NCBI GenBank assembly: GCA_030704615.1
Contig: CM060732.1
Location: 81,406,001 to 81,470,000 of the forward strand
DNA: 64,000 nucleotides
DNA from: Takakia lepidozioides
Lineage: Eukaryota; Plantae; Bryophyta
Direction: 5' to 3'
Shown here: positions 875-54,951 of the stretch, piece after piece
Numbering within the stretch: the first letter of the stretch is position 1
Layout of the letters: every line of letters starts with the position of its first letter
Position numbers and translations under genes: made by a program
Notes under the pieces: generated by a model
The model's input: the letters and a program-made list of their open reading frames with translations, nothing else
Databases searched by the model: none
Told to the model about the DNA's origin: nothing

Positions 875-3800
875 TCACTGCCACGGCATCCTATTTAGAT
901 GTTGTCCCTGTGCTGGCCCACTTCCCTTTCTGCTACTTTTTTCCCTGTTCTTCCTATTATGATTAGGGTCATTCAAATTTGTACTGGGAGGTGGACATGA
1001 AACTGGGTTTCTTTCCCTCTCTATCAGTGCAAGAGGTGGCTGTCTGCAGTACTCACTGGAACTTGCATTGGAAGGGGGTTTTTGATGGGCACTGCCACTA
1101 CGTATTTTTGGGACGGGACACTTTTCTTTATTTTGGTGAGCCCCATGATGCCTCCCATAGTCTTTTGCATGACTTTTCAAGGTCCCAGGAGACTGCTCAC
1201 GACTTGGGGACCTCCTAAGGAATTTCCCATGGGTCGAGGGACTGTCAATGGACGTACTTGGCGAGTGGTCATTCAGCTGCAGCCTGTCCCTTCTTTTAGA
1301 TACATCAGGACCATGAAAGAGCTCAGCATTGCCAAAATCAGAGTCGGCACTGTGAGATTGGTGGACCATTTGACCAGGGAGGGCGACCCCAAAGGAGCCA
1401 TCACAAACGCAAGGGGATCTGCTTCTTGAGATACCATTGCTGCTCCTCAAAACATGAGACCGCTCAACAGAGGTCTCTCTTTTCACATGGTCCTGTCTCC
1501 CAATATGGGAAATACCAGGGGGCTTACTTCGAACAGAACTCTGGTGTGAGGAGGTGTTTCGTCGCTGAGTATAGGGGCCATTAGGGGACTTCCTATGTTG
1601 AGAATTGTCCCTCTCTTTCAAGGGGCAAATATTGGACTTCTGGGGATGGTTGACCCTTGGGAGAGTGTAGGTGCTCTCAGCAGACCCACACTTCCCTTTG
1701 TGGCCCACATCATCTTTGGATGGGTACTTGCTCTGTAACAAAATGTCTCTTTCTTGGGAAGGACCTTCAGTGGAGAGCAAGCAACAGGCTGCTTCCCTCT
1801 CTAAGCTTTGATGGAATCGGCCATCTGTTGGTGTGGGGTATCGTTTGTCAGATAGTGCAGTGCCATTCTGCCTGACTTTTGCACTCCAATGTTCTGTGAT
1901 CTGTGTGAAATTTCTTTCTTCTTGTGAGGAGCTCTGAGTATCCTCACTCAGCTCTGTAAGTGGTGATGGGCTCCTGTACAATTTGTCATCCTCCTGTGCT
2001 AGTAAGTTTTTTGCTGTTTGAGAAGTGTTTTGTTTAATTTTCTCAAATTGGACAAGCAAGCTTTCGTATCGGGCTTGTAAACTTTCAAGACACTCATCCT
2101 GGGGGAAACTGTCACTTGGTTCACTGGTTGCAGTTTTAGGGGACTCCATCTCTGGTTCAGATGATTGCAAGCTCATAGACAACACGCTAACCTCTAGTCC
2201 TTCAGAAGGAAAGCTATCGTGGGTTACATCCCTCATCTCTGCATGAAAGCTCTCCAGAGGCTTCGTCCATGGCAACTTCCTTTCATGAGTGCAGGAGCTA
2301 CCAATCAACTGCGTTTCGGCTTCCTGAGTTTGCAGCATCCTGAGTACCTCAGGTGGAGGGTAGTGTTTCTCAGACATCGGAGCATTGCGTTGCTCAAATT
2401 CCACTAATTGTGCATGGAAGATATAGGGTGATGTTCTCTGTCGGAGACGATCCTTTTTATCAGCTGTAAGGCTCCCAGGAACTTTTCTGTGGGAGTGTCC
2501 TGTCTTAGATAACTCTCGATCCTCTGCTGGGGGATAGTATTTTGGTGGACTCGTTTTGTTAATATGTCGTACCTGGGCATGGTGGCTTTCAGAGGACTTG
2601 CCTTTGCCTTTGTGCTTCTGTGGGGTTGCATGTATATCACCATCCCGTGACTGTTGTCCAGGAAATTGGAGTTTCCTCACCAGAGCAGAGGCCCTTGAAG
2701 ACTTGCTATGTGGGTACTTCTTACTTCCTTCCACACAGGAGCTCTGAGTAGACAGGCTTTCTTCACTTTGGGATAGTGGTTTCCCACACAAGTGGCTCAC
2801 CCTTGGGGAGGGGTATTGTTTCCCTGATGGAGAGGTGACATGGTGCTCCACCACATGTCTCTGGCAGTGGGAATTTCTAACGAGCTGACTCCAATGGATG
2901 CCATCATCTTCATGCTTTCTGCCACCTTCCTCTCTTTGGAATTGCAACGCCTCAAACAAAGGGTTTTCCCTTGGAGTGGGATAGTGTATCTCGGATGGAG
3001 GAGTGACATGGTGCTCAACTGAACCTCTCTGGTAATAGGAGATTCTAAGTAGTTGACTCCACTGCATGCCATCAGGTCCGTACATTTCAGTGCCCTCCGG
3101 AGTGAGGGAGTTGTTCATTAATGATGTAATGGCATGTGAATCCACATGCCCTGCTTCGGAATGATAGTGCCTACAGAGATCAATCTGGAACCCTTGGGGA
3201 CAGTTGCTACTATGAGAGGAGGTGGGTCCAATGGTTATATGAGGTAAGTCGGTGGGAGGTTCATTTCGTAGGGGTGTGAGACCTTGATAGATGTCCCCCT
3301 TTCTCTGCTTGTGGAAGTTACCATGGGCTCTATGTCGTTTTCCTTCATTGTGTTGGTTGTGCCAAGAGCTTCTACAGTGTTCACTCCCTTCACGGTCCAA
3401 ATCTCTCCTTGTCTCAAGAAGAGAACCCTCGTCCATACTGCTACACTTCTCTGTATCTCCCTGCCTGGTAGGATTCTCAGATGTTGTACTTCTGTGATGT
3501 GTTTCATTGCCCATATCGCAAAGGGAGCTTTCAGAGGTTGTAGGGAAGCCCGAATCATCCCATGTTGCTGAACAGGAAGTTTCATTTGAATTGACCTCTG
3601 GAGTTCCAGGCTGTGAAATTCCAACCCCTCCCCAGGGGTGACATCTCACAGAAATTGTGTCCAGTTCACACTGAGATGTACTTTCATCCCCCTCTCTATC
3701 ACCCTGGCAGTCTTGAGAGAGAATGCTCTCTGGGTAGTGCAAATCATTACATGTATTTTCATGGTTGTTCTCACTTCCCTCTTGGTCCTGGTAGCTTGCA

Positions 3801-6800
3801 GAGGGTTGGCTCTGTAGCTGCTGTGAATCAACTCTTTGAGAGGGAAAGCTCTGGTGTAGATGGATCTGCAGTGTCTTGTAATGGGAGGCTGCAGGGGGCT
3901 TCCTCCTTCGGATTGCAGGCTGAATCAATTCTCAACAGAAGGAACATGTTTTAGCATTGATGAAATGATTGGAAGATTTGATGAGATCTACATGTGTACT
4001 GTACTTTTGATGCCTTACCATTGCATGAATTTCTTTGAATCATGTTTAGTTGTCAGTGTCAGTATGAAACTCCCATAGCTTTCCACTGCTAATGACTGCC
4101 CATCAGAGATTAAGCTCGTACCAAGAGTACTGCCAGTGACTCCAATCCACTGCAACTGCACTGTTACAACTCCAACCGGCAGTCAAACTGCAATTTGAAC
4201 TAGCAGGGAGGAGGGAGAAAAGAAAGGGAGTACCTTGGGTGGAAAAGCATGGGAGGCACGTTGTTTCGACCAAGTGTTGAACAAGTGTAACACTTGAGAG
4301 GTACTTGTAGGTGGGAATATTTGTGCCAGCTCCATGGCCCTCTCACTGGTGATTGTGATGTGGGGTGGCACGTGCTTGAAGTGACGCCTGTAGTAGGCAC
4401 GGGCTGTCCATGGCACCCAGCTTCTCAGGCGTTGGCCCAAGTCCTATGAATTTTGTCAGAGCTCAGGTCAGTGGAAATCATAATGTTCCTACGGGCATGG
4501 TCTAAATTAGATACTTAGCAGCCCCTGTCCTATTCCCCAAATCTCTGCAATGTAGTTCACAATGAATGTGTCTTTCTTGGTACCATTACAGTTCCTTTGG
4601 TGTCCTACTCAGTAATTCACGAGGACTATTGGGGTGGATAATGAGAATGGCATGTACCTCAATGATGGGCATGGCCTCTATCTTGAGTCGGACATACTGG
4701 GCCCTCATCTCTGTATCCAAGCCAAATTTATCCAATTTTGAACTGCTACCAAACTGCATCTCCACTAGTGTTTGGCTGCTTTTGAGCTCTTTCTGCTTCC
4801 TCTCTGTTGCCTGTAGGGCAAGTATGTTTTGAGTCTCCCACACTAAAGTGGGTGGTGAGTCTGTCTGTAATAGACGAATAGTTGCACCTAAGTAGGCAAG
4901 CTAGGGTTTTTCGAACTGTTTCCTTACTCGGGTTAGTGCATAAGCACAGTGATTCAAGACAAGCAAATCCAACCCACAGTGATTGAGTGGAAACTCTGAG
5001 ATGGACAGTGGTTGATGTTTTAGAAGGCATACAGAAGAATCATGTAACCTTGATTTGAATCTAGTATTATTGCCACTGATATCCTTTGAGTATAATGCCT
5101 TAAGAAAGGCTTACCGAGTTCTTTAAACGACCGATAGAATATGGCAATGTGCTCTGAAATTGTGCAGCGTGGGCACCCTGTATGTGAATGTAAGGGGTGA
5201 CATTCTCACCCAGTGCTTGTGTGGCAGAGAATAAAAACTCTTTGGCCAGTACTGGCAAACTGCATCCAATCAGAATTAGAAATGATGTTACTTGTGTAAC
5301 TGAAGGAATTCAGCTCCTATGGACTTCTGTTCGTGCAGCAGCCTCATTTGTTTGGTGTTATACCCTAGTTTTACACTTCATACTTGAACTCCATAACCTG
5401 ATGGGGGTCAGAGCAATTGGTGGCAATTGCTGGTAGAAGCAAGAAGACCAAACTAACAATTGAACTGTGTCCGCAGAAGGGGCAAGGGACAGGGAACACT
5501 ACTGAACCAAATACAAAACTTAGTGAAGGGAAATTACTAATTTGTGAAGCTAGAGTGTAATAGAATGTAAGTTCAATAGATAGTTACACCAGTAGCCAAT
5601 GAAAATAACTTGCTCAACATGCTGCTGCTGCTTCTTTCATAAACCCACACCTTCGAAGCTTACTCTACCACTAAGGTTGTCAATAATCAACTGGTGGCAA
5701 AATGTGGAGTACACAACTAGCCTATGAAATCCTTGATTGATTGCTTTCAGCTACTGCGAAGTGACAAACCCAATTTGTGCCAGAGCAAGTGGTGAAACTG
5801 TTAGAACTCTGTCTTAGAATTCCCAAATTCTTGAGGGTTGCATTCAAGCGCGCACTGAAACCCCGTCACAAGCCTTCTTCAAGGTCATTGTGGACCTAAG
5901 CACTTCTATTTCATATGCTAGAACTAAATGCAGTGGCGGAAGATTGTTTGTAATGAAATGGGACAGACAATCTACGGAGTAGAGGTTTGTCATTAAGGTT
6001 TGGAGATTATACCTGTCATCATGGGAATATGGGTGAAATTTGTATACCATTTGCTGTAATACATTGAAGCGTTGGTAGGTGGACCACATCCGCTTTGTGT
6101 AGCTGAAAGTCCTAGTGCTTGGCAATCCCTCTATCACCTGTAGTGCATTGAACTTACATACTTGAGCTCAGAAATATGGCATACCCCATTGTTGTGCTTT
6201 ACAGTGATTTCTTTCATGTTGCACACTGCTGTTAAGTAAACATTATTTGGACCTCGAGTCTAAGTCAGTAGATACCCCAACACTTTTGTGGCATGTTACA
6301 TCATGTGAGTGAGTTTGTGGAACCAAATTGCTCTCAAATGCATGTTGTTTTTTGCTTTACTTTGCATCTCATCCTTCGATCTTTTGTTGCAATTTGGTTA
6401 AGAGCTTTCAAACACCTTCATCAACACCAGGGATGCAGGAAAGTGTGACTGACCTTCAATAATATGTCATGATGGTTCAATATATGGTGAGCAATGGCTT
6501 CGTCAAACTCATCATATTTTAATTCCTTCAGTGTGGACTGTCCGGGTAATGCTTTTGAATCTTTGATTTGACATGGGATTGAAAGAGGAGGATTGTCCAT
6601 CGCTTCCCTAAGCAGCTCAAGACGAGACTTGGGGTCTCTCAAACTCCTCACATCACTACATTGTGCTTGTGCAACAACCGCCCTCATCATGTGCAAAACC
6701 GTGCGAATAAGAGCATGTCGTGCACAATATGTAGCCGCCGACATGTATCCTGGAAACAGCTACATTACAAGCAATTTCTATGGGCTCAGAAGCTGAGATT

Positions 6801-8488
6801 GGATTGTCATATGTCATGTGTCACGGCTGAATACAAATTACTAGATCAGAGGTGATAGTATGGTACAATTGTAGGCCATGAAATGAGAAAGAATACTGAT
6901 GAGGAGGAAATCTATCGTGTGCAAAAGTGCCAATGCTGTATCTGATCAGGTGTACACATTTCTTCTTCTCGGAATGCAAGTAAATATTGGATCTCATAAC
7001 GCTTGAAAAATCCACCTTATGTAAATTTTGGCGATTAGTGGGCCAGTGACTCAACACAGTCACAAATATCCGTGCAGGCAAACTCTCCAAGATCGGCTCA
7101 TCGTCTCCAATTCCCTCCAGACAGGGATTAAGCTCCTGTGATCACGATCAAACCTCAATTTTGTAACCTCGCCTAAAACTGAAGACAAGATGTTGAGATG
7201 CACCTAAATAAGGTACATGCCACTAGACTGCAGGTAGTAGGCTTTGTAGTTGTAAAAACCGTGATTGATTCGCTCATCCTTCTATGCTAGTAGTTTGTCT
7301 TTCTGAAACCCATGAGCCTCTTCTGTTGTATAATATTGTTATATACAAGTTCGCACTGTGCATCCTAACAAAGATTAGGATTGCACGTACCACCAACATG
7401 GCTGGTCGCATATGATAGTGGGTAGCCAAAGAGGTGACGGTGTCACCATCAACCAGAGCATGCTTCGTCGTGACATCTCGTAGCTGACACTTTCTCTTCA
7501 CATTGCACCATGGGCAAAACTGATCACCGAAAGCGCTGATGCATCCGTTACACACAGCCGTTCTAAAGAAAGCCATGTGATGGCACTCGATAAAAGCCAC
7601 CTCCAATCGCCGCCCCTCTCCGAGATCCAACCCATCTTCTTGAACTGTATATAATTGTTGCATCAAGTTCTGAGGATCTTTCTTATCAGCTATGTAACTA
7701 TACGTTTGGTCCCAGTTGTGATCTTTTCCTGCCCACTTTGCTACACTGATGCAGGACAGAGGGCTCATGTCACACAACAACTCCATCATCACCTCACATA
7801 CACTTCCTGGCTTGTCATTGTGGGCACGGGCGTCGATACCCAACTTGAAATGTGCAACCTTCTCTATCTTGGTATTTGTCCGATTCTCATGTATGAGAAT
7901 CAAGCAGACCAGCCAAGCTTGAATGCAATCTACACGCACACCAAAAGTATCCCCGTTAATGGTAACCCACCCAAAACCCATGCGTCTTCCCTCTGCTGCC
8001 CACTCATCTAGTTTTCGAGCAATTGAGACAGGACATGCCCCCTTCAAAACACCGAAATCATCGATTTTTCGAATGACCCCCAACATCTCTTGTGAGATGG
8101 TGGCTGAGCTGAAGATTGTTGCAAGTTGCTCAAAACTCAAAGAGTGGCTGTTTGGACCTGTCTTCTTCAAATTTCTAACTCTCTTTTGTTGCTTGATTTT
8201 AATCCTCTTCTTTGGTTTAATTCTCCTTGGTCGAACTTGGATGGCCGAAGGTTTACTAGATGGATCGTTGACAGCGGTGACAGGTGCCACCATCGGTGGG
8301 CGCTTGCCAGTAATTACCACAATCAAGCGTGGGCGCATGCAAGTTATCACTGTCTCTCTTGACTCCTTGCAAATTTCTGTGTTGCATGAAGTCCCGGGAG
8401 TATATCGAGCTTCTAAGTGCTCCACTGAGTCGGTATGTGAGGCAGCAGTGAGAATGGTTTCCAATTCCAATAGACCACTGAATGGCTC
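875..8488 (-). CDS. RAG1/Transib-like transposase-fold protein with LysM-like insertion and long disordered C-terminal tail (putative domesticated transposase; 5' end uncertain)
   Basis: Exons 8488-7391, 7135-7016, 6759-6454, 6137-6013, 5259-5115, 4810-4658, 4443-4234 and 3919-875 have GT-AG junctions, consistent phases and no internal stop (1733 codons). Motifs in order: KLGIDAR, ECHHMAFF, FCPWC, CARHALIR, MWSTY, VTPYIHIQGAH, SIGRLKNS|ATERKQK. The first 7 exons are well supported by motif continuity. The join to 3919-875 is less certain. The first in-frame ATG is at 8338; otherwise there is an unidentified upstream exon. Confidence 0.72.
2800..3075. repeat. Degenerate coding tandem duplication, 168-bp (56-aa) period
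   Basis: 2800-2907 resembles 2968-3075. The protein copies are QWSQLLRISYYQRGSVEHHVTPPSEIHYPTPR and HWSQLVRNSHCQRHVVEHHVTSPSGKQYPSPR. Confidence 0.85.
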
Positions 8489-9746: not shown

Positions 9747-12700
9747 TTAATCCACTTGATTCAAATTTTCAGAGGACAATGAACGTGCATTGCAAGTCCT
9801 GTGTGCCTCCTGAGGGAGTCGCAGCTCCTCATAGTCCCCAACAACGACCTGCTTCCATCAAGATACACAGACAAGGCCCCTTCTTAGCCCACTCCAGAAC
9901 AGGATTTACATTTCTAAATCCTTCCCGCCCATATCCCAAACCCCAGACTTCCATAACCAGCACAGCTTAGGACACAACTCAACTTTCTGTCAAATCAGGC
10001 TACGGCAAACAGTCTTATGAGTACATCTATCACATCATGTCCTGTGCCAAGTGGAACAGACCTTCATATGCGAAAGTGTGGGATGTTGTCAACAGGCCCT
10101 GACTTCTGTGTTCAAGGAGAGGAACTTGTGCTTCCACCATCCCATACAAGGACCCTTGTACCATGTAATGCCCACATCTCCAACTCATTTTTCTAATCTT
10201 TGAGTGTGGTTAGCTTAGTTCAGCCCTTTAGGCAATGGACAATCTAAGACTCTTAAGCGCTTACACAGTTTTCATTGTCCGTCCAAGTTGAACCTGACGC
10301 ACGCTGGAACAAAGAAATGCTACACCGCATACACTTAGAGCAAATGTACAGTTGCCAGATGTTTGACCACCAATCACAAATTAAAAGAACTGCAGGAAAG
10401 CAGTTGAAACAGAGAGGGACTTCAGGATCTATGTTTCTGGGGGACAAAAACATTGTTGAACAGATCTGAGCTTCCCATCACTCTGAGGTGAATCTACTGG
10501 CTGTTATTGAACAATCATGCTGTTCTTTGGATTGTCATGTTGCTAATGTCTGTCAACCTGGAAGGTTCCAAAAGGCTGATTAGACATTGAGGTCATGTGC
10601 ATCAGCTGCTGATGAGGCACATAAAGATGAAAATTACTCCTCCATCATGCTGTAATACTGCTATCCTACTTTTTGACAGACTCTCCACTCCAACCATTGC
10701 CAACTGTTACCACTAGAGACTTCGGAACCCATTGGTATCCAATTTGGTGAGGCCACTGCCCATAGTCCCCTGCTAGATGGATCGGGTAAGTCTACCTCCA
10801 ATATAGGCTTACGCAGCCCCAGGACCACAAACAGTGATGCCAAAGTGCCCTAAACATCTCTGGGGTTACCTGTCTGGTGGCTATAATTTCATTCCCCTTC
10901 TCTTAGGGGAGCTTTGGGGAGTAATCCAAGAATCGAGAAGAGAAAGAAAGATACATATAATGTGGCACTCTACTAAATTCACAATTGAGAGGTAACCAAA
11001 GATAAGATGACACAGCCACATCCAAGGTAAAGAAAGATTACAAAGATAAGACAAAATCAACAGAACAAAACATCAACGCAAGTCCCCGGAAGAAGATACA
11101 GTTAAAAAGGACAAATGAAACAGATCGGTCCCTCATAACTAAGAGAAATGAAATGGTACTTCATAACGTCTGCGGGAAGCTCAAAGAGTTTATGGGAAGA
11201 AGCAAAGACCATATATGACATCCACAGGGGGGCCCAAGGGTCCATGGACCAAGTAGAATGACAAGGGACCTAAATCAACGTACTCCAAATGACGCCCAAG
11301 ACAAACTGCCTGATACAGAGAGAAAGAAGAAGACGAGATCACGGGAGGCCCGAGGAGACCATCGAAGTAGAACAGCAGAGACAGAACATCAATTTAAAAC
11401 CCCAACATTCAGGCACTCCTGACCACTGAGAAGACTAGGGACCAAGACTTATACCCAGCTCAAGAGAAGAAGTGGCAGAGGAAGAAGAAAAGAAGAAAAG
11501 AAGAAAAGAGATTTATTATGTCCAGAAGGGCCACTGAGGACCCCTCGGACACAAGTAGAGAGAGACATGCCTGATATTGGGAGCTCTGGAAACTGTAGGC
11601 AACTTCTAACTGTTTGGTTTCCCCCGGGCAAGGGTCACAGAAGCCCATTAGCCCCGCCTTCTTCACTCCTGCATACAGCTGCACCCAGTGCCAACGAGCT
11701 ATTAACAAAAAAAATGGGCTGGGTGAACTTGGATACAAATTTCAACCTAGAAACTTTGTTTGCTAGAAAGCTACTATAATTACAGCTTAGGTCACAGGAA
11801 ATATTGATGATGGAGACATAAGGGTATCTACTGTCAGCCTGTTGTCATGACAGTGGAGACAAACCTGGAGTTGGCCATGGTCATTAACCAAAAACTGCAA
11901 AGGGATAGCCACATCTAAGTAGGGTGGAGGGAGGTCTGAGTCATCCTCCTCTGGTCGTGCCCCATCCTCCTCACTATTAGAGGTCCTGCCCCCAAGGTGG
12001 GATTTTATGGCTCCATACAAAGCCTCCAGAATAACCAATCCATCTCTCTCAGCTTGTACCCTTTTCTTCTGCTCTGCAACATTCCGCAGAAGCATTTGTG
12101 CCTTCTCAGATGTGGCCCTTGCCTCAAGTACCTGGGTCCCAGCTAGCCAAGATCATCAGCAGAACATTGTTCCACTAGAAATCGCTAGAGGATCGTTCAC
12201 ATCCTTTAGTAAAAGGGCTAGATTGCTGCTTATTCACAACGACATCGACGATCAGAGACTATTCAATAGTCTTACCATAGTATCATGGGTGCCTAAAATT
12301 CCATGACCAAGAGAGGAGGAACATGACTGATCCATCTCAATCTTAACTCTACCTGGTGTGGTCAGAACGAGAGGAAGAAGAACAAATATTTATTGCCATG
12401 GGAGGTCAGAAGGCCCATGGGACAATGTGAAAGTAGAGTAACTGAAGGACACATTAATAACCACATACATTGCATAATGCAATCCCAAATCTGGTTTGGA
12501 TGGAGGAGGAAGCTGAGGAGGAAACTGAGGAAGAAAAAGAGGAAAACCCCAAACGTCACTCAGAACGAAGTGCCTATGAAAGAGAGCAGCTGAGACTATG
12601 AAGAAAAAAGTTCAAAGAGAAGACACATGCACAGGAGGCCCAGACAGGCCACAGAAAACATCCACAGGAAGCCAAGAGAATTGAAAGAGACCTGAGTGAC

Positions 12701-15700
12701 AGTCAGACGCCGTTGCTCAAGACTCTTTAGCCGCTTTCTCCGAAGATAGTATGGCTTTAAAACAAATATCTGCATAGAAACACCCAATGACAAAAGAAGC
12801 TCATATCGAAGGTCAATGCATAAGTCACAACTGCAGGGAGCCATCCCCAACAAGGGGAAGTTGGTAATGTACGCATCAGATGTTGCTTGCCATAGCCTTA
12901 TGGCCCAACACAAGAGGCGCAGAGCAGCAGGACAGTCTCATTACAAGTAGTGGTCCTTACCACAATTATATACAAAACTAGTTTTGGCTTTCAGGATTTC
13001 TTACAGACAGCAATGAACTCTAGCATCTAATGGTGCGTAACATTAACACAATAATTCAGACCCAGTGGCTCTCTGGTCCTAGAGGCTGAAGGCTTCTGCC
13101 ACTCTCCAAAGAGGGGTAATTACTAATCAATGTACGTGGGGCAGGCAAAAACGATAAAATCTACTGTGTTTCTGTTTTGTGAGAACCAACTCAAAAGGTT
13201 CCCACAGCCTTCTTGAGGGATGTGGACAGGAGCAATCTGATTGCATCAACCAGTTATCAAGAGGGAAAAAGTAAGAAAGAAAGAAATCCACTGGAGAGAG
13301 AATGAGGGAGAGTAGAGAGAGAGAGAGCTGACCTTGATCAAGGCATATAAGGACGATGGCAAAACTAAAGCTCCAGTAGCTATCACTGGATTCAGTGTTG
13401 AACAAAGAAAAATCTGGGAAAGAAAACATGCAATGAAGTCAAAAAAATCAAATAGTTGGGGAAAAACAAAACACTCACACCCAGCACATCAAAACAGCCC
13501 AGTGCCATCTTTTAACATTGGGGATCCGCGATTCCCAACACACTTGCCAGCTTGTAAATCATCCATACAACATTTCTATGACATCCCAAGGCTTCTACTC
13601 CACCCTGTAGGTCTTGCTGCTTGCAAGGTTGCATCATACTTTTTAACAAGCTTTCCAGACCTTAATTTTGAGACAATCAGAAGTCTAGAGGATGCAGACA
13701 AGGTAATGACTGCAGAACGCAAATAAATTGTGATGTCCACGAGGTGCTAGTGCAGCAGTTTTAGTAAAGATGTGCATCACTTGTAGTGCATTAAAGGTCA
13801 CTTACAGTCTGCATCTCTGTAAATCTTCACAATACATATCTGTACATGTATGTAACAGTGACAGACAGAGGTAGAATCCTACAGGTAAAACAAACTTTTG
13901 GCCTCCTCGAGTAAACCGAACTCTCCATAAGACACCCTGCATCAATTGCAGACAGTTGATAACAAACAGTACTTTTGTTCAGAAAAAGCCTAATCTTCCT
14001 TGAAATTTGCTTCCAATTTCCTAAAATAAGTTCTAGTCAAGGAGTCATTTCAAAAAACCCATCCAAGTCAAGTACAAAGGAGTCCAAAGAAGAATCCAAT
14101 ACAAAGGAAGAAACGAACTACGTATTGACAGTGCTGATGGACCATAGGCTATGACACATCCATTCGAGGCTACCTGCCACACCTAGTAGTGGGGAACTTG
14201 GACAAAATCTGCTGTAGGGTTTTGCCTGCAACTTACAACGAACTAATTACATGGTTGATTGAGTGAGAGAGAGAGAGGAAAGGAGACATGCTGATTGCCC
14301 AGTGGGGCACCAACCACCATTTTCGAACAAGAGTTCACTAATACACTGGCCGGGATTCAGCAGAAACTGTGCTGTTGATGCCATGAAAGAATTCCACAAA
14401 TAGCAATAGAATCTGTAAGAAAGAGAATCCCAGAATTGTAGGGGCAGTGAGTACCTGGAGGCCGAGAACACAAAACATGGCAGCTGAGCTGTGCTCTGAC
14501 ACTCTCCTCTCTCCTCCTATCTCAACCTCTACTCCTGTGCTGTGTAGCGAACATGAAGGGAATTAGGATAGTTTTCTACTGCACAGCTGTGTAAGAAAAT
14601 TGTGCATTGGAAAGTGATCCAAAATCAAAGTCGTTTCACCAAGGATACCAATATCTGTCAAAGCAGAAAATTTATGCCAGCAAAGGGTGAGACACTTTCC
14701 TATGTTCATCTTAAGTGATTGAGATGGGCCACATGTGCAGCCCAGCCCAGCCCACTGAAAAGTTATGTCGGGATTTTTAGAAGAAGAAAAGCATTGCGTT
14801 AAAGTTGACAAGGAATTCTTGTACCCTTCCCAAGTTGCCCCTTTTGCTGTGGATCATCCACTTGTTTGGTTTTGTTACATATTGACAAGCGTAAGTTAAG
14901 AGGTGGATGGACCTGCCAAGCTTGGCAGAAACACGGCCTTGTGACTTGGATGAAAAATGGCGAATGTACTGTCCAGACAGCCCAAAGGTTGTTGGCCCCA
15001 CCTTCAACATTCCAACACAAGTCCTTCGTCAGCTCCTTCAAGGGATGAGATACTCACATTTGCAGAACGAGATCTTGCTTTTGGGGTCTGTCCTCCCAGG
15101 TTCCCTCTCAGTGAGAAGGCAGACTCGACCCCGCGCACTGATGGAGGAGAAAATCAAGCTCCAATTGACAGTGGACAGGCACATGACGGTAAGAGAGAGG
15201 GCACTCCAGGGGACGATGGAGGGAGGAGGACAAAAGACACTGACCTTCAACTCCCCAGAGCCAGCATTTTTCTTCCCATGCCGCTGCCAACCCACTGAAA
15301 TCCCTGTATCCGTGCCTGTGATCAACTGTATCTGTTCAAACCCCAGATTTCACCAAAGTATCAATGTTGCCACCAGCACACCCTGATGTCTAAAATATAC
15401 AAATCCATGTTCTTTAAGGAAGAAGGCTCAACAACAGCAGTGAATAAGCTTCATGCTATCACAGAAGGAGAGAGAAGAGAGGGATCAGGAGTACATTGCC
15501 AGTGGTCTCTTCAGATAGTTGGCGCGACCAAGTGTTTGCCAAGGTGATTGACCCGTCCCTTAATGACACTGTCAAGTCCAGGGTTCCTGTTGAATGTGAT
15601 GATAACTGCCTGTCAACCGGATGACCAGTAGTTCTCTGCCATGTCAGCACCTTCCTAGAACTTGCAATCACTTCATGTAATTCTTTTCTCTCTCACTTCC

Positions 15701-18700
15701 ATGTCAAGCATTAACAGACGGAATCATGTGCACGGAATGAAGCCCCCCACTCTGGACACACATCACTGGACTTATATTGTTAACTCCCATAGATACTACC
15801 AAGGGACTTTAGTTTCCAAAACCCTAGCTTCCCTAGCAGTTTCATCCAGATGAAGCTACTTTCAAACTCTGCCTGTACCTTTTCTCTTGGGAACTCTTGT
15901 CACAACTCCAACTATCACTCTTCTGTTGAAAAGGAGAAATAGAGCACACCTGGAGGTCTGAATACTCAGAATGGAGCGAAGCCCAACCATACCCAGAACC
16001 TCCAGAGATGAAAGTGGTGACAATTGGCGCCGCAAAACTACTGTCACTGAGCCCCCGCCCAAGCCCCGCCGCAATGCCATGTTGCCACCCAGCACAACTG
16101 TGTCCCTCTTTGACAGCTGGACTTGTACTTGCGTTGACATTGCCATGCTGTACGCACAACCCTCCCCAGTGCACCCATGAGAGAAAAAGAAGACAGAAAT
16201 TTATCAAGTTGGCGGGAATCCCAGGGGCCTGAAGGGACACAAGTAGAACAATGCAGCAGAGTCACACAGGCACAGAGAGGAAGATTTCCAAGATAACAAG
16301 GAGACAAAACAATAGAGTAAGAATGAACTGTAATGTTGTAGTTGAAGTAACCTACATATTGCCAGTCAGCTAACGTGACAATAAACAGACCCATCCTAAA
16401 TGTTTCATTTGGAATCCTTGGGAGAGGGAACACATCCACAAACCACTTCTTTACAGATAGATAACACAGAGTTAAGACTGGTGTAAGAACTGATATTATC
16501 TATAAGGTTACCTTCGGATGCTCTGATTGCCAAACCGCATAGGTAACTTGAAACCCGCAGACCTCAATTGTCCCAATTGACCCCTTGCCTCGTCTCTGGG
16601 GTGGGAAACCCAAGGTCTATGATTTTTCACAAGGGGAATCCCAACCCACCTCAGATATTTGAGAAATCATGTTCTGTTTATATATGTTTCTGCCTGTCCA
16701 TTGTCCCTCTCTTCTCTCCCCTATACTCACATCATTTTTCCAGCATTTATGGTCTACACTACCAATCACAGAATGTATCTGGTTTTGCATTTCCAGCCAT
16801 CAATTCATGAATATGCAAATCAACTCGCACTATGGAGCTATGCAGCAGAAGTCCAAAACATGCTAGTAAAATCAGCAAGCTATTTCCCTCCTTTAGTTTG
16901 TCCAACCCATGTCCAACACAGCTCTGCCACAGACTGCAGCATGCACCAACAAAGCCACTAGCAGAGTTCTTCTGACAAAAGAATGCAGCACTAACCACTC
17001 ACCCCACTCTAATTATTGCTTCTCTCTGCCCTCTGCCAAGGGAAAGAGAGAGAGAGAGAGAGAGAGGCGCTATTAGCTGTCCTTCATTCAAAGGTCTGAC
17101 TTTTCCTTGCATTCAGCACCACCAGTCAGACCTTGTTTGAAGTCCACTGTGCTCTTAGGAGTTGCAGCGAAAAGAGAGGACTGTGACACAAGCAAGACAG
17201 ATGTATTACCTCCCAACAGTTTTTAGGGTACACTATCTTCTAAATCATGATAAAACAAGATTTTAGCCCCTATGGTAACCAAGCCAGAAACAATGCTTTG
17301 GTAGGAGAAGAGAAGAAAACGAAGGAACTTTACGTATCCACGGGACGCTCAAAGAAAGGATCCATGGAGGCTCAAGGGCCCATGGGACAAAGTAGCACGA
17401 AGAGAGAAACAGAGCCCCAAGGGTCAAAAATTTAAGTATCACTATGGGAGAGCAGAAACTAAAGAACGAGAAGAGACTGTACTCATAAGACTTTGTTTGC
17501 CGTAACCATTGCACGAAGACCAGAGAGAATGTCCTCATTGCTGTAGCCTTGTTGCCATAGACCTCACGCCCAGTATGGGCGGAACAAGAGGGAACGGGAC
17601 ACTACCTTTGTGAGGTGCTCACTCCAGTAGTGGCACTTACCTTGACATAAACAATTTGTTGAAGGAGAAAGAGAGAAGAGAGAGAGAGAGTACCCATTCA
17701 TCCTTGGGCCCGTATCAAATGACTGGAGAAACTGGGCTAATGATAAATTTACAAGGAGAGACCCCTGGTGGTGCACATGTGCTGCCAGACGCCTGTCTTC
17801 CTGCCGCTGCTGCAAACGCTCAAATTCTGCCTTTACTTCTTCTCTTGTTTTCAGCTTGGGCCCTAGCTCTAAACCTGATGTCAATCCCTGCATACCATAG
17901 ATATCATAGATCTGTCGCTTGCGTTCACTGCTCAAGATCTCGTACGCCTCCCGGATCCTCTGGAAATTTGCTGTTGCAATGTCTTGCATCTGTCAGACAA
18001 ACACAATGCATGCAAGATTTAATTCTCTCATACTAGCCCGGAAACAGCATCAGGAGTGTACAATTTCCTGATTTATCGAGTTTGAATCAAAGTGGTGCAC
18101 CATCCATAGAATGTACTCGTGCCATTCCCTGCAAATGTTGGCTCGCCACAGCCTTATGGCCATTGACCCCACAGGAAACTAACCCTCCCAAAGACTTTTG
18201 TGGGGCTCACACCCACCAGGGTTTAGCTTATCCCGCAGCTCAGCTGCAGGTATAAACTTATGTTCCCGCAACTGCCGTTAAGGGGCTCACAGAGGCACTT
18301 GTCTGCATGCAAACTCAACAGCCCAATTGGAGAGTTTTTTATTTTAGTTTTATAGCCCTGCGTTTGCACCATCCATTGAGAGACCTACAGAGCAACAGTA
18401 AGACAACCATGCACTGATGACACGAAGGTTTCTAGATGGTAACATGCTACTTTCGTATACATCACCCACATTGCAATGAGGCAACATGCTTTAAATGGTT
18501 GCATTGTCCAAATATCCCGAAAAATGACTTCTCTTCCTGTGCTAACAAACCCCCTATGACAAATTGCTTCTAGAACCACAAAAGGGGTTCCCTGGAGTAA
18601 AACCTTTCAGCTTAGCCTCTCAATGGTAACCCAGTTTCTATGAACAGTATACCATCTCCAAGATCTGCTGACTAATGACAAAACCCTGTCTAAAAGTCGA

Positions 18701-19841
18701 TAGCTCCTACTGCCTATCTCAAAAGCTTGTACAATTTTCCCAAACGGCCAGGTAGGGTTTGCAAGAGCGTGGGGACACCAAATACCATAAACCTTCTATT
18801 GCTCCCCAACAGGAAATAACAGTACAGAGAATCTCAGAGTCTACTCCTTCTGGTGATGGAAAAAGTCACTAATAATATGAACAAGGAAAGTAGACAAAAG
18901 ACCAGGGGACGGCGCAAATTAAGCCACTCAAACCCTTGTAAATGACCTAGCAAAGTGAAGACTCAGGCAGACAAATGGCAGAAAACATAATCAAGCGGTA
19001 GTTTGTGGATGTAATGTAGGCTAGACATGCAAAGAAGGGTGAGTAGTGTATGCCAGTAGTCTTCTGACCCCAAACCCAAAACAGGGAATTTGTGAAGCAA
19101 TGATTCATGAGGGAATTTCCATATCCACATGGGAAGACAATATGCACTAACAAGAGAAGACAATACAGTAGGAACCAGAGTGGACTTCAGGGGATAATTC
19201 CAATGTATGAGTAAGGCTCAAAAGAATACAATCTGATGAGAGAGGAGCGATGGATAGGGACGTCGTCACTGCAAGGTCAGAGTCCCAGGTTGAAAGGCAT
19301 CCGCCAGTCACCGGTGCTGTTTTAAACGACTAGGGTGCATGAAACTCAAACACCAATGGGACTCCCACACAACACCTTACACAGGAACTTGGGTGTTGCT
19401 GCAGGCTTTTGTTTCCATCGATGACATGATTTCTGCACTGAGCTGGAGCTGGTTGTGGAGTTGTAAACAGCAAGCTTATGAAAATTTGCGCCAATTCTCC
19501 CTTCGCGCTCGTGCAGCCAACGACAATCGGATTGCCGGGAGGGGTGGTGATTTGAGGGCATCGACAGAAGGCACGATGGTCCAACACGGCCGCTGTAGCA
19601 ATCTACCTTGACAGAGGTGTGACAGATACGGCTGCGTTCCCACATAGATAAGAGAGAAAAAAGAGTGGCAGAAAAAGTAGGTAGAAGGAAGAACCTGAGG
19701 AGATTGGTGCTTGTCGGGGTGATATATTTGAGCCCATTGCCGGTAGGCCTTCTTGATATCCTCGTCTGAAGCTTCGGGCGAGAGATGCAGAAGGGCATAC
19801 AGCTCTCTAGCCGGCTGCTCGTCTCTTTCAAACTCCTCCAT
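9747..19841 (-). CDS. OWL1: J-domain protein of the DNAJC11/OWL1 (chaperone protein dnaJ 13) family, 13 exons, 568 aa
   Basis: Exons 19841-19695, 17989-17694, 16147-15950, 15609-15495, 15331-15245, 15001-14913, 14539-14455, 13936-13883, 13413-13333, 12769-12692, 12131-11865, 11678-11571, 9848-9747. J-domain [25 protein letters not shown] (HPD motif) and C-terminal [29 protein letters not shown] are colinear with Arabidopsis OWL1 as I remember it. All phases are consistent. Confidence 0.93.
17045..17066. repeat. (GA)n microsatellite (others at ~13313-13327, ~17677-17690, ~62672-62689; (TA)n at 37856-37872; (TTTTG)n at ~63806-63830)
   Basis: Directly visible in the sequence. Confidence 0.9.
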
Positions 19842-22766
19842 CACCCCCGCCGCTGTGTCTCACTCACCGCACTCCCTTGCCCTCACGCATCATGACCACA
19901 TTCTAAAAATCTCTGCTTCCTCAAAACCCAATTGCTAAATTTTCCACAAAAATTCTCTTCTTGACCTCTACATTTCTCCATCTCGTCAGAAAGTCATGTG
20001 AAGCCACCGAAACTGGGCTGCCTCTTGCTGCTCTGTTTTGAAGCATTCACCCGAGCAACGAGCAACATTGAGTGGAAAGGACACGCACCGACGCCCATTT
20101 GCCGCATGGTTCCGAGGACGGTCACACCCTTTCCTACTCTGCATGACCCAAACAAAAACTTTTGGTCGTGCTACTTGCCAAGTGTCTCCACCATTACTGC
20201 AGCCTTTGGTTCTGAATTCTGCGCTCTGCCTGTTCCCGGCTATGAGAGCAAGTGCCCCACCTCCACGCCCCACATACTTCCTTTCGGGGCCACTAAATAC
20301 ACTTACAGCAGAGCCCAAAATGTGGTGGTGGTCGTTCATTGGACTCAATGGAAAACTCAATGTCCATGTGGCAATCCAGTCTATACCAATACCAATAACA
20401 ATAGGACAAGAGTTAAAGATGCTAAGGCCTTGGCACTGACAGAGATGAATCGTGGAAACAGGCTGATGCCCTGCCCAATTGCAGAGGGATAAGTTAGTAG
20501 ACTATTTTCTGGAATGTTCTTTCTCTTGCCAGGAACAGCCATAATGAGCAGAATGGATGTGAACCTGGAAGTCTCTGAAGAAGAGGAAGATGGTCAATGA
20601 TTGCATGCAGGTTTGAGAACTTCAAGAATGCATCAGAGATGATGGCTGTGAATGTGAATGCGAAGGCAGGGGAGGCGGGCTATGATCCTTTCTTTCACTG
20701 ATGAACACGCTCTCCGACCTATTGCCAGTCTGAAAAGACTGAGAAGGAGGCGGCGGAAGGCCATAATCGTAACAGCATTTCAAATCTGCAAACTTGGAAC
20801 GGTAGTTCTGGTGAGAGGTGGTGAGGTTAGATAAGTAATGATGGAAGCAATCCGATTTCATTGTTCCTGAATGGCAGAGGTGACCTTTTATTCATAAATT
20901 TCATCAGATGTAGGCAGGCATGAAGCAGTCCTAATCATTCGTGCACATGCCGCAGGCTTTATCAATTGTGGGTCCTTCAGTATGGATTATGCACTCTTCA
21001 GTATACTAAATGCACTCTGCAAGTGGAGGGGTTCCCAAGGCTGATTAATTCCATGCAAAGACCACCATTGATTGGCAAGCCCTGCAAACACTGATGGAAC
21101 TCCATTATGCGTGATATCACTGACTGAAATTTCATGTAGTCTCAAACCGCAAACTAAGATTGGACAGAGACTCAAAAGACAGATTATTTGGAGCAGCTCC
21201 AATTTCTCACTTCAGATGAGTCTTGTACACCATTTTGTCAAACACTTACCTTTGTCCTTTGCTAGGAAATGATGAAGCAAATGGTACAGTCATTAAGGAA
21301 TGTTGACAAGAACCAAGTGACCAAGCTTGCACATGGCAAAGCATAGTGGACAAAATTTTATGTAAAAGCATCAGCTCAATGACCCGAATTGAAATGATTA
21401 CTCTTGAGGGTCACAGCACAGGCTGCCATGTCAGATCCAGTAAGGAAATTCCCAGCAGCCTTATCTTCCTCTCCCTTCCTCTGATAAAATGGCTTACCCA
21501 GGTCCAGTTGGTCCAACAAAAGGGTTTTGACCGAAAATTCAAAAACTCTTCACCGAAAGCCTTCGCCAGTTACAGGTGGGAAAGTTCAATGGATCATTAA
21601 CTGCATCTGAGTCTCTGCCCATGTCTCTCATCTCTTCAGAATGCCTGTTTGAGATTGTTTGCTTCTCTCCCCATGCACTGCTGCAAAACAGCAGCGAACT
21701 GAACTCTTCACATCAGAACGGTGAACAAGGCGAAAAAATCAAAAACTGAATCTCACATGGCATAGAATCCAAACACACCCTCTTGAGCTGCCATAACTTC
21801 CATACTATACGTGGTAGCTTATCTCCCTCTTCTCTTACTGTCTTAGAATGTGAAAGGAAGATAACTGACTAACCACTAATCAACCAGTCCATCGTCTGGA
21901 CAGTATGGTGCATGCATCCAGAAACATTCACCCAATTTGATCACTTACCATACAGCTGGAGCGCACTTGGTGTCTGCCACTGCAAGGAGTCCTCTGCGGT
22001 TCCCAAACTGACCTTTGTCACTTCCAAGTATCGAGGCCAGCAGGCTCTAGTAGCTCACTCAAAACTTCCAGACAATCTCCGTAAGCCGGGGGGGCTTAAA
22101 TTATTTGAACATAAGTAGTTGCCCTCCAATTCTAATTCCACTGGATAAGACTTGGTCTCTCAAGAAACTAAAGAACCACTAAATGGCTGTTGGCATCACC
22201 AAAGACATAGAGAACCTCCAGCACCTGTGACCACCAAACCCACTGGTGCTGCCACTGTTGTTTGAGGCAGGACACTCGCACCAGAAACTCTGCTGAATTC
22301 AATCCACCGAAAGAAAATATAGCCTTTTAATCTGTCCTCAGCAGTGATAACTTGTGGTTTTCCTGTCTGAAACAAACATCAACGCCCTGTTCTATGTCTT
22401 GATCAACTAATGAGGTCCACTATCAAATGGCAATGCCTGTCACTGGTGAAGTAAAAACCAAGATTCGCCAGTAAAACAATTTGAGAAACTGTCATTACCC
22501 CTTGATGTGCACACTGGTAGCCCTGTAATAATGTCAACCGGATCTCTCCAGTTCCTCCAAGAGGTCAATGGTACAATTGTCAAGCAAGAGTGGCTGTTGT
22601 CTTTGCGGTTGCAGTCGAGACTGGGAAAGACTCTGCTCTCTGCTCATGCCTGGATAACAACTTATATGTTGTGGAGAGTGCAAATTCACGAGTGAATCTC
22701 TGGCAAAATCATTGCACCTGTTACTCCACTTCAAGAAAGTGATGGACAATTCGTATCTCCTCTTTG

Positions 22767-36300: not shown

Positions 36301-36976
36301 GTTCTGCCAACATCAACCTCTTTGCTTCAGGCCTACTACTACAATACTAGTGGGGTCTACACGACAGATTACCCGGAAACTCCACCTGTGCCGTATGACT
36401 ACACGGGGATCGGCCCTTTTGTGTTTCCAGATGCAAGTCAATCCACAAAAGTCATCGTCGTCGAATATGGCTCCGTCGTGCAAATGGTATTGCAAGATAC
36501 AAACATAATTGGTGTTGAAAACCACCCCATTCATCTGCATGGTTATAGTTTTTTTGTTGTAGGGGTGGGGTTTGGGAACTACAATGCCTCAACTGCAACA
36601 TTGAACTTGGTGGATCCACCGAAGCAAAACACCATTGCACTTCCAAAAGCAGGCTGGGTGGTCATCAGGTTCACTGCAGACAACCCAGGTATGGAGCCAT
36701 TTGCATTTTTAGAGAATCTCGCATATGATTCATCTACTATGACTTGCAGTTTCTACTAGTTATGCTTATCAATGAGGAACAATTCTTGAAAGTGCTATCT
36801 TGTTCAGCAGAGACTAACACATGTACGCTTGCATATTTTCCGCAGGTGTCTGGTTTTTGCACTGTCATTTGGAGATTCATATGAGTTGGGGTATGAAGGT
36901 GGTGTTCATCGTGAAGAATGGTGTGGGTCCAAAACAAACACTTCCTGGTCCGCCTTTGGATTTACCGCAGTGTTAA
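33309..36976 (+). CDS. LAC: Laccase (multicopper oxidase), copy 1, 6 exons
   Basis: Exons 33309-33500, 33713-33864, 34440-34699, 35374-35502, 35693-36688, 36846-36976. Copper motifs [28 protein letters not shown] and the C-terminal DLPQC. The start may instead be a downstream ATG (33330 or 33369). Confidence 0.95.
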
Positions 36977-54400: not shown

Positions 54401-54951
54401 GCCCTTTTGTGTTTCCAGATGCAAGTCAATCCACAAAAGTCATCGTCATCGAATATGGCTCTGTCGTGCAAATGGTATTGCAAGATACAAACATAATTGG
54501 TGTTGAAAACCACCCCATTCATCTCCATGGTTATAGTTTTTTTGTTGTAGGGGTGGGGTTTGGGAACTACAATGCCTCAACTGCGACATTGAACTTGGTG
54601 GATCCACCAAAGAAAAACACAGTTTCCATTCCAAGTGGAGGCTGGTCGGTCATCAGGTTCACTGCAGACAACCCAGGTATGGAACCCTTCGTGTGTTTAG
54701 AATGTCTCCCATATGTCTAGAACTATGATTTGCATTTTTTCACTAGTTATGCTTATAAATGAGGAACGAATTCTTGAAACTCAAACTTGTTCAGCTGAGA
54801 CTAACATGTACGCTCCGCAGGTGTTTGGTTTTTGCACTGTCATTTGGAGATTCATATGAGTTGGGGCATGAAGGTGGTGTTCATCGTGAAGAATGGTGTG
54901 GGTCCAAACCAAACACTTCCTGGTCCCCCGTCAGATTTACCGCAGTGTTAG
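51413..54951 (+). CDS. LAC: Laccase (multicopper oxidase), copy 2, 6 exons
   Basis: Exons 51413-51601, 51787-51938, 52516-52772, 53375-53503, 53690-54676, 54821-54951. All four copper motifs are intact and there are no stops. Confidence 0.95.

Follow-up and report, generated by a model that had tools for sequence, protein, structure and literature searches.

Does the moss Takakia lepidozioides encode a LysM domain, split by an intron, within a RAG1-like protein, and what would such a domain do there? The question is raised by a 64-kb stretch of DNA, called the window here, in which a sequence-only reading had seen a LysM-like domain joined by splicing from 7391 to 7135 and inserted directly after the zinc-binding CxxC of a transposase core. 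The segment 7462-7052 on the minus strand, interrupted by the intron 7390-7136, is probably a genuine LysM fold of about 50 residues that makes up the body of the region equivalent to ZnC2 in a RAG1/Transib-like protein encoded by a host gene.

Gene structure, orthologues and selection

On the minus strand the last codons of exon 1 are ...ATG TTG GTG, ending at 7391, and GTACGT follows from 7390. The acceptor, ...cacAG, is at 7137-7136, and exon 2 opens with GAG CTT AAT CCC at 7135. The intron between them is 255 nt long, has GT-AG borders and is in phase 0 on both sides. Joining 7391 to 7135 rebuilds the LysM-like run LVDGDTVTSLATHY ... MLV/ELNPCL (the slash marks the junction), and the blocks 7465-7391 and 7135-7061 encode exactly the two 25-residue peptides of the earlier proposal. 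The signature was scored as G-D-T-hydrophobic-x-x-[IL]-A-x-x-Y for strand 1 and helix 1, together with L-x-x-x-N for the end of helix 2. Its residues are found in the moss gene as L-V-D-G-D-T-V-T-S-L-A-T-H-Y, followed by M-L-V/E-L-N-P across the junction. A loose regular expression for the first half (hydrophobic-x-x-G-D-[TS]-hydrophobic-x-x-hydrophobic-[AS]-x-x-aromatic) has a single match in the six-frame translation of the window, at the LysM-like site. Shuffled windows gave a mean of 0.01 matches to the same expression, with 2 of 200 shuffles matching. The presence of the signature residues and the rarity of chance matches thus bear out the LysM-like run that had been read at the spliced junction.

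The seven exons (Table 1) all have an open frame and are bordered by GT-AG sites in compatible phases. The second half of the moss module is divergent and has three additional residues where P0019, an intronless open reading frame from a metagenome, has a Gly loop. The C-x-x-H motif of exon 3 would be the counterpart of D792/H795 of RAG1. His795 is an active-site residue of RAG1 (PMC7204232). The rows for exons 5 and 6 align side by side on both P0019 and P0017, a protist transcript from the MMETSP collection. The H-x4-H spacing in exon 5 matches that of the RAG1 zinc histidines, which we take, in part from PMC10579426, to be H937 and H942. The Glu of exon 6 aligns with the third catalytic Glu of P0017 and P0019, and is Gly in the orthologues L001 and L002. 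None of the RNA runs listed was shown to contain the stretch, and the one RNA contig placed on the gene (303 nt, 4876-5178) is unspliced and falls outside the 7391/7135 junction.

Table 1. Parts of the RAG1-like gene and their coordinates in the window
Feature	Position	Strand	Content
Exon 1, open frame, start not fixed	7391..8470	-	N-terminal region and RNase-H-like core of RAG1-like protein
NLS-like basic run in exon 1	~8236-8162	-	
D213	7834-7832	-	first acidic residue
E-C-H-H motif	7588-7577	-	His where relatives have the second catalytic Asp
CPWC	7516-7505	-	CxxC zinc pair
LysM module, first half	7391..7462	-	last 24 codons of exon 1: strand 1, GDT loop, helix 1, start of helix 2
Intron 1	7136..7390	-	cuts the LysM module within helix 2
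LysM module, second half	7052..7135	-	first 28 codons of exon 2: end of helix 2 (E-L-N-P-x-L), loop, strand 2
Conserved linker, remainder of exon 2	7016..7051	-	S-H-W-P-x-N-R-x-N-x-x-K; donor GT at 7015
Exon 3, 102 codons	6454..6759	-	opens with L-F-P-G; C-x-x-H motif (Y-C-A-R-H, His 6717-6715)
Exon 4	6013..6137	-	ends in phase 2
Exon 5	5115..5259	-	T-P-Y-I-H-I-Q-G-A-H; H-I-Q-G-A-H at 5186-5169 (His 5186-5184 and 5171-5169)
Exon 6	4658..4810	-	opens with A-T-E-R-K, Glu 4804-4802
Exon 7, last conserved coding block	4186..4443	-	stop 4185-4183 if there is no further splice

The proposed splice is found again outside Takakia. Seven orthologous loci (L001-L007), at 38-45% protein identity to the moss gene, have GT...AG at the identical codon boundary and in the same phase, with introns of 201-505 nt, and in each of them exon 2 is exactly 120 nt long and is followed by GT. 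Residues D213, E295-M299, C319 and C322 are invariant in the eight orthologues. The D-T, L, Y and N of the LysM signature are kept in all eight, and the Gly of GDT, retained only in the window copy, is lost in the other seven. The Gly-containing last loop, between helix 2 and strand 2, is replaced in the moss clade by one that is three residues longer. Within the second half of the module an Asn and a Leu are invariant across 11 sequences. Unsaturated pairs give the module a dN/dS ratio of 0.02-0.38, similar to that of its flanks; the LysM module is under purifying selection. The gene occurs as a single copy within the window, and its synteny with a DNAJC11-like neighbour is conserved.

In two more distant relatives the module is contiguous. 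P0017 and P0019 read straight through the junction, and the exon rows abut against these contiguous sequences with neither gap nor overlap. Exon 1 is 28% identical to P0017 over 264 amino acids (E 2e-17) and 30% identical to P0019 over 151 amino acids (E 2e-10). Transposon-like relatives retain the canonical E-G-D-T-[IM]-S-S-[IV]-A. The family appears small: an exhaustive search of representative proteins found only 39 proteins, largely exon-sized fragments, and searches of a word-indexed protein set, made with P0019 and alignment A5, returned nothing beyond P0019 itself. No convincing inverted repeats were found on the P0019 contig. The homologues that the earlier proposal had named as a check therefore do retain the module, in seven orthologous loci and in the contiguous P0017 and P0019. 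The module is probably ancestral to this small and sparsely sampled family, which comprises a protist transcript, an intronless metagenomic reading frame, transposon-like plant fragments and the moss host gene. In its plant members the module is split by a conserved phase-0 intron within helix 2.

LysM profiles and the fold of the module

The Pfam LysM profile (PF01476) has 43 positions and a gathering score of 20.9 bits. No match to it was found in the window pieces searched separately (exon 1 as a whole, the 53 or 30 residues at its end, and exon 2), which is not a true negative because half of a 43-position domain is too short. Residues 436-500 of P0019 score 20.7 bits (E 4e-4) over profile positions 6-42 of 43, that is, 0.2 bits below the cut-off. 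The whole of P0019 matches at the homologous place with an E-value of 0.025, and P0022 matches at the homologous position with 17 bits (E 0.0058). Among thirty-residue pieces of the first half, 4 of 22 match Pfam LysM, the best with an E-value of 7e-5.

Profile searches of the Protein Data Bank covered 177,635 sequences. For the profile built from the 22 first-half pieces, the top five matches are all LysM proteins (LytE at 2.5e-4, 4uz2 at 8.7e-4, Ecp6 and YaaH among them). The exon-by-exon profile A7 gave 23 matches, 15 of which are LysM-domain proteins, and its alignments cross the exon junction, over positions 2-32 for YkuD and 2-40 for MltD. The profile of the second half (exon 2) alone found no LysM protein in the PDB. 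The alignments used (A6, A7 and A8) were limited to a region; the MAFFT alignments A2 and A4, which mixed long proteins with exon rows, misplaced the exon rows and were discarded.

The fold evidence comes from P0019, a homologue that is only 20-38% identical in this segment. The AF2 model of residues 150-760 contains a strand at 288-294, helices at 301-308 and 312-318, and a second strand at 337-343, with pLDDT of 84-90. The model superposes on 4uz2 with a root mean square deviation of 1.5 Å over 48 residues (Z 6.3, 25% identity) and on 5k2l with 1.9 Å over 49 of 49 residues; YkuD and Ecp6 also superpose. The segment also resembles in fold an assembly subunit of the mitoribosome, which is intracellular (6sg9_CJ and others). 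The model of moss exon 1 alone, made with eight close sequences, has pLDDT 33 and is unusable. The P0019 segment is thus predicted to have a β-α-α-β fold that can be superposed on solved LysM domains. This is the fold that the sequence-only reading had asked to be looked for, and it is confidently modelled in the homologue. Together with the family-level profile matches, the model supports a LysM-type module in a RAG1-like scaffold, immediately after its CxxC.

The RAG1-like scaffold and its zinc-binding region

Ranks 1-41 of a Foldseek search with the P0019 model are occupied only by RAG1, BbRAGL and HzTransib (best E 2.9e-5), and these three also fill the top 30 of the VIA run restricted to Foldseek matches. 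By VIA the P0019 model matches RAG1 (4wwx) with Z 13.5 over 389 residues, BbRAGL with 10.8-10.9 and HzTransib with up to 10.9. In an exhaustive fold search of 48,161 chains the first five are RAG1 and BbRAGL, and HzTransib has Z 8.6, amid unrelated helical matches of up to 8.9. P0019:150-760 is accordingly modelled with a RAG1-type core fold, consisting of the pre-RNase H and RNase H parts, the ZnC2/ZnH2 insertion and the C-terminal domain. The RAG1 Pfam families gave no match at E-values up to 10, and RAG1/Transib chains in the PDB gave no sequence match with A1, P0017, P0019 or A8. The relationship to RAG1 is visible only at the level of fold and motifs.

The ESM Atlas feature scores to RAG1 clusters, 0.83-0.86, serve as leads only. 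The structure neighbours in the Atlas include clusters of Transposase_21 (CACTA-type), so the placement in a superfamily is tentative, and no Atlas cluster is annotated with both RAG1 and LysM families.

The order of motifs agrees with RAG1, BbRAGL and HzTransib: an acidic residue on a strand, an acidic residue after a strand, CxxC, [C/D]xxH, H-x4-H, and a Glu about 20 residues on; the RAG1 side of this order is drawn in part from PMC7204232 and PMC10579426. On the residue mapping onto RAG1 that we infer, the moss catalytic triad reads D213/H298/Glu (exon 6) and is not an intact DDE. Position 298 is Asp in P0017, P0019 and the transposon-like fragments, and His in the moss clade. The putative C2H2 zinc ligands, CPWC and H-I-Q-G-A-H, are conserved in the moss clade. 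A RING finger was considered for the Cys/His run before the module and rejected: the spacing is off the RING consensus, Pfam has no RING in exon 1, and the fold search places the homologous region of P0019 in the RAG1-type core.

The distance from CxxC to [C/D]xxH is 93 residues in the moss gene and 90 in P0019, compared to what we take to be 65 in RAG1 in our own numbering. Because of this spacing, the LysM fold of about 50 residues would largely stand in for the body of the RAG1 ZnC2. The position after CxxC that had been proposed for the module is therefore right, but 'inserted' is too simple a description, as the module largely replaces the ZnC2 body. In RAG1 itself ZnC2 is low in secondary structure and owes its stability to ZnH2, RNH and RAG2 (PMC10579426). 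The zinc-finger-B region binds RAG2 (PMC1131882), and the ZnC2/ZnH2 patch binds flanking DNA (bioRxiv 10.1101/2023.08.20.553239). It is conceivable, if unlikely, that a LysM fold was the original ZnC2 body in a deep branch of the RAG1/Transib family. It would have served as a regulated docking site, whether for an accessory subunit, a ligand of the GlcNAc type or a chromatin protein marked with O-GlcNAc, in the place where vertebrate RAG1 later held RAG2. Binding there would gate the binding or cleavage of DNA, and the ZnC2 of RAG1 would be a decayed remnant.

Origin, role and known relatives of the module

That the segment is a look-alike, a lineage-specific β-α-α-β elaboration of ZnC2 which came by its LysM residues through convergence, is quite unlikely. 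Such an origin would agree with the single-sequence Pfam scores, every one of which is under the curated cut-off, with the second half alone having no LysM match, and with the spacing, which shows that the segment replaces ZnC2 residues and is not a whole added domain. However, independent family members match Pfam LysM at the same position and in register, two different profiles put LysM proteins first in the PDB, and the model superposes at 1.5-1.9 Å, with 24-26% identity, over whole small LysM domains. Furthermore, the ZnC2 of RAG1 is described as poorly structured (PMC10579426). It is very improbable that the junction is unused, or the locus a decaying transposon relic, and that the joined peptide is never made. 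In favour of this reading, exon 1 has no fixed ATG start, and the RNA runs listed gave no support for the junction. Against it, every exon has an open frame between GT-AG borders of compatible phase, and seven other genomes, at the protein identities given above, preserve both the junction and its phase along with an exon 2 of 120 nt. The dN/dS ratio is well under 1, and a single copy in the window keeps its synteny with the DNAJC11-like gene.

If the module is a genuine LysM fold, it could be a glycan sensor, binding GlcNAc ligands (chitin, peptidoglycan fragments or O-GlcNAc-modified nuclear proteins) and coupling the ligand to RAG1-like DNA binding. The module is LysM by profile and fold and is under purifying selection, the window copy keeps D-G-D-T-V-x-S-L-A-x-x-Y and L-N-P, and the transposon-like relatives keep the canonical GDT motif. 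Nevertheless a sensor is unlikely. Classical LysM ligands are extracellular or periplasmic, whereas the moss protein carries an NLS-like run, and inspection of the open exon 1 by eye showed no signal peptide. Seven of eight orthologues have another residue in place of the Gly in the GDT loop, the loop between helix 2 and strand 2 has been rebuilt, and the match to the mitoribosome assembly subunit shows the same fold in an intracellular protein. It would be likelier for the module to serve as a rigid surface on which a partner protein or DNA docks than as a sensor of GlcNAc polymers, and it is towards this docking role that we lean slightly.

Judging by its conserved synteny, purifying selection and D/H/E triad, the window gene is a host gene and not an active element. 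The triad, the synteny with the DNAJC11-like gene, the intact C2H2 zinc ligands and the NLS-like run of exon 1 suggest that the moss protein is a domesticated, catalytically disabled derivative, and it may be a nuclear DNA-binding factor. The LysM module would be held beside the zinc site, where ZnC2 and ZnH2 of RAG1 touch flanking DNA and RAG2.

The moss family resembles several known systems, and differs from each. RAG1, BbRAGL and HzTransib are the best whole-chain fold matches of P0019. Unlike in RAG1, the region that is poorly structured ZnC2 there is occupied by a compact LysM fold. Unlike RAG1 and Transib, the moss clade has His in place of the second catalytic Asp, neither a RAG2-like neighbour nor TIRs were noticed at the moss gene, and this gene is found as a host gene of a land plant. 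Land plants were first reported without recognisable Transib (PMC1131882), and only a few flowering-plant scaffolds were later listed with it (PMC9435367, supplement). The domesticated plant transposases FHY3/FAR1, MUSTANG and DAYSLEEPER (PMC4948706) are comparable as syntenic, selected host genes with a damaged catalytic triad. However, they are of Mutator or hAT origin, and no member of the group is reported to stem from a RAG1/Transib-like source or to carry a LysM. A combination of Transib with LysM was not found described in the literature searched.

The LysM domains of PF01476 (Ecp6, YkuD, MltD, and the chitinase LysM of ferns and Volvox) share with the moss module the β-α-α-β order and the residues x-V-x-x-G-D-T-hydrophobic-x-S-[IL]-A-x-x-Y and L-x-x-L-N. 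The moss module, in contrast, is a single copy within an enzyme-derived, nuclear-type protein, which is not secreted, wall-bound or a receptor; it scores just under the Pfam cut-off, and its last loop is rebuilt. Eukaryotes also have intracellular LysM proteins, namely LysMD1-4, the LysM-TLDc proteins, and the non-secreted and F-box LysM proteins of plants, with a single cytosolic or nuclear LysM for which no glycan ligand is known to be established. The moss module would resemble them in these respects. Their LysM is terminal and free-standing, whereas the moss LysM lies inside the protein, with the zinc cysteines on one side of it and the remainder of a transposase-type insertion domain on the other.

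RAG1 is the classic example of a transposase that became a host enzyme, and plants were for a long time believed to have no relatives of it. A moss gene that is under selection, syntenic and built on a RAG1-type core would be an independent domestication of such an enzyme in plants, and a LysM fold at the zinc-binding region would add a domain combination that we have not found described. Because the module is sited where RAG1 meets flanking DNA and RAG2, it may give a means of testing how the accessory surfaces of this class of transposase evolve and what is bound by LysM domains inside cells.

The exon junction and the LysM-type module

The gene is read from the minus strand and comprises seven exons. 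Each exon is open, all borders are GT-AG and the phases agree. The sequence-only reading had proposed that splicing 7391 to 7135 rebuilds a LysM-like run, and this proposal was confirmed. The two peptides quoted there are exactly encoded by nucleotides 7465-7391 and 7135-7061, and the 255 nt intron between them is GT-AG and phase 0 at both borders. In each of seven orthologous loci from other genomes (L001-L007) a GT is found at the identical codon boundary and an AG precedes exon 2, which is exactly 120 nt long in all seven and is followed by a GT. The length of intron 1 in these loci is 201-505 nt. A word-indexed search with exon 1 retrieved seven proteins at 38-45% identity, the contigs of which supplied L001-L007; they are ORF calls that read on into the intron, all from the same residue. 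Two distant relatives, the protist MMETSP transcript P0017 and P0019, an intronless ORF of 897 residues present on several metagenome contigs, are contiguous across the junction. When exon 1 tails and exon 2 heads were entered as separate rows of a region-limited alignment (A7), the rows abutted on P0017 and P0019 with zero gap and zero overlap. The sole RNA contig on the gene (303 nt, 4876-5178) is unspliced and is positioned away from the junction. The comparative evidence indicates that the junction is real. A loose regular expression for the LysM first half has one match in the six-frame translation of the window, at the junction site; in shuffled sequences it gave a mean of 0.01 matches per shuffle (2 of 200 shuffles with a match).

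The designation of the domain as LysM-like stands on family profiles and on the predicted fold of P0019, whereas the window's own exon pieces have no LysM match in Pfam. P0022, a further relative, and whole P0019 match Pfam LysM at the homologous place (E 0.0058 and 0.025, respectively). For residues 436-500 of P0019 alone the score is 20.7 bits (E 4e-4), just below the cut-off of 20.9, and the match spans positions 6-42 of the 43 in the profile. Four of 22 thirty-residue first-half pieces also match (best E 7e-5). When the 22 first halves were combined into a profile (A3) and run against all PDB sequences, ranks 1-5 were LysM proteins: LytE (2.5e-4), the Thermus endopeptidase (4uz2, 8.7e-4, and 4xcm), Ecp6 and YaaH, in each case aligned from the beginning of a LysM repeat. 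Of the 23 PDB matches of A7, 15 are LysM-domain proteins, including Ecp6 (1.6e-4), LytE, YkuD (0.0024), a LysM receptor kinase, fern and Volvox chitinase LysM, intimin, MltD and AtlA. The alignments to YkuD (positions 2-32) and MltD (2-40) cross the exon junction at 26/27. The top A7 match, a designed repeat protein, was judged spurious. The second half of the module is divergent in the window copy, and exon 2, used as a profile by itself, matched no LysM protein in the PDB. The LysM segment is retained in P0017, P0019, P0016 and P0022. Furthermore, the textbook E-G-D-T-[IM]-S-S-[IV]-A occurs in many of the family's transposon-like fragments, and thus the signature is ancestral to the family and no quirk of the window copy.

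The fold evidence reaches the window module by homology through P0019 (20-38% identity in the module). An AlphaFold model of P0019 residues 150-760, built from a 28-row alignment, has a mean pLDDT of 64.9. Its residues 288-343 (P0019 437-492) form a strand-helix-helix-strand unit with pLDDT 84-90. Foldseek and VIA were used to superimpose this segment onto solved LysM domains: 4uz2 (Z 6.3, 1.5 Å, 48 residues, 25% identity), the Volvox chitinase LysM 5k2l (1.9 Å, 49 of 49 residues), YkuD, Ecp6 and a fern chitinase LysM (TM 0.77 by target).

The RAG1-like scaffold

The RAG1-like scaffold claimed earlier is upheld by the P0019 model. In the Foldseek search, every one of ranks 1-41 belongs to RAG1, amphioxus BbRAGL or HzTransib (best E 2.9e-5). 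By VIA, model residues 1-611 superimpose on residues 455-1001 of the RAG1 core 4wwx (Z 13.5, 389 residues), with Z 10.8-10.9 for BbRAGL and 8.6-10.9 for HzTransib. When 48,161 chains were compared exhaustively, RAG1 and BbRAGL took places 1-5; the best unrelated chains reach Z 8.9, covering a helical stretch only. Searches for a sequence link matched neither a RAG1 family in Pfam nor a RAG1 or Transib chain in the PDB, and the structure neighbours in the ESM Atlas include Transposase_21 clusters, with RAG1 clusters only as weak feature matches. The window protein is therefore provisionally called RAG1/Transib-like, by predicted fold.

The motif order agrees with that of RAG1, for which we take the relevant residues to be D600, D708, C727, C730, H795, H937, H942 and E962; the residue mapping is inferred. 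F-K-L-G-I-D holds the first acidic residue, and the second acidic position follows a strand (E-C-H-H in the window protein, E-C-H-D in relatives). Then come the CxxC, C/D-x-x-H (Y-C-A-R-H), H-x4-H (H-I-Q-G-A-H) and, 21 residues further, a Glu. Mouse H795 and the ZnC2 and ZnH2 zinc-binding domains are named in PMC7204232; the human counterparts are D603/D711/E965 and C730/C733/H940/H945 (PMC10579426). Outside the plant clade the zinc ligands are not conserved: the CxxC is absent from P0017, P0016 and P0022, and in P0019 the first Cys and the two histidines are missing.

A host gene and its surroundings

The window gene is a host gene and not an active element. It is the only family copy in the window, and the order and orientation of an upstream DNAJC11-like gene are common to the window, L001 and L002 (DnaJ block 86-87% identical). 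For unsaturated pairs, dN/dS is 0.02-0.38 in the LysM codons, much like the zinc-motif flank (0.07-0.32). Exon 1 contains an NLS-like basic run. The catalytic triad appears, from the residues aligned, to be broken, with His in place of the second Asp in each of the eight orthologues. The third Glu is retained in the window and L003 and is Gly in L001 (A-I-G-R-K, 11337-11345) and L002 (A-M-G-R-K, 11654-11662), a further indication that catalysis is not the conserved property. The 6.1-kb P0019 contig showed no convincing terminal inverted repeats; a gene for a 610-residue C5 DNA methylase lies on it, downstream of P0019 (L008:3799-5631).

Features of the window
Feature	Position	Strand	Remark
Exon 1 open frame, ending M-L-V	8470-7391	minus	GTACGT directly after
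Exon 2 start, E-L-N-P-C-L	7135	minus	conserved coding block directly after cacAG
Multi-exon DNAJC11-like gene (DnaJ, DNAJC11 beta-barrel, C-terminal blocks)	11463-19844	minus	synteny anchor
1017-residue Ser/Pro/His-rich ORF	875-3928	minus	directly downstream of RAG1-like gene
Two laccase-like (multicopper oxidase) paralogues	~33764-36759, ~52490-54720	plus	by eye, ORF list
Kinase-like ORF	22767-23696	minus	weak Pkinase_fungal match
NIF/CTD-phosphatase-like ORF	48475-48984	plus	

The Ser/Pro/His-rich ORF has no Pfam match. L001-L003 have large ORFs at the corresponding place, with no similarity to it at 1e-5 (tblastn). The exon sequences of the laccase-like paralogues are near-identical, which suggests a tandem or segmental duplication.

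Kapitonov and Jurka reported no recognisable Transib in plants (PMC1131882). Tao et al. listed Transib-like proteins from plants, 39 in all; in the available portion the species given are flowering plants, and a search of the supplements yielded neither three bryophyte genera nor 'LysM' (PMC9435367). None of the papers searched combined 'Transib' and 'LysM'.

Position and possible role of the module

In this catalytically damaged RAG1-like protein, a constrained LysM-type module lies beside a C2H2 zinc site that looks intact. The RAG1 surface at ZnC2/ZnH2 contacts flanking DNA (bioRxiv 10.1101/2023.08.20.553239) and RAG2 (PMC1131882, PMC10579426), and by analogy the most likely role of the module, slightly more probable than not, would be that of a rigid surface on which a partner protein or DNA docks. 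Classical glycan sensing is improbable, and less likely than docking, because the protein looks nuclear, seven of the eight orthologues lack the Gly of GDT and the last loop has been rebuilt. Furthermore, model residues 288-348 match a Trypanosoma mitoribosome assembly subunit (6sg9_CJ, 7pua_CJ, 9hny_CJ; Z 5.8-6.0), and hence intracellular, non-glycan settings of the LysM fold exist.

The module had been described as inserted after the CxxC. It is indeed at that place, but between the second Cys and the His of C/D-x-x-H the window protein has 93 residues and P0019 has 90, compared to 65 in RAG1 by the numbering given above, so that a fold of about 50 residues is no pure addition. By these spacings it would largely stand in for the ZnC2 body. 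In RAG1, ZnC2 has less than 38% secondary structure and no hydrophobic core, and is stabilized by ZnH2, RNH and RAG2 (PMC10579426). The LysM fold may have replaced the ZnC2 body, or else the ZnC2 of RAG1 may be the remnant of a decayed LysM.
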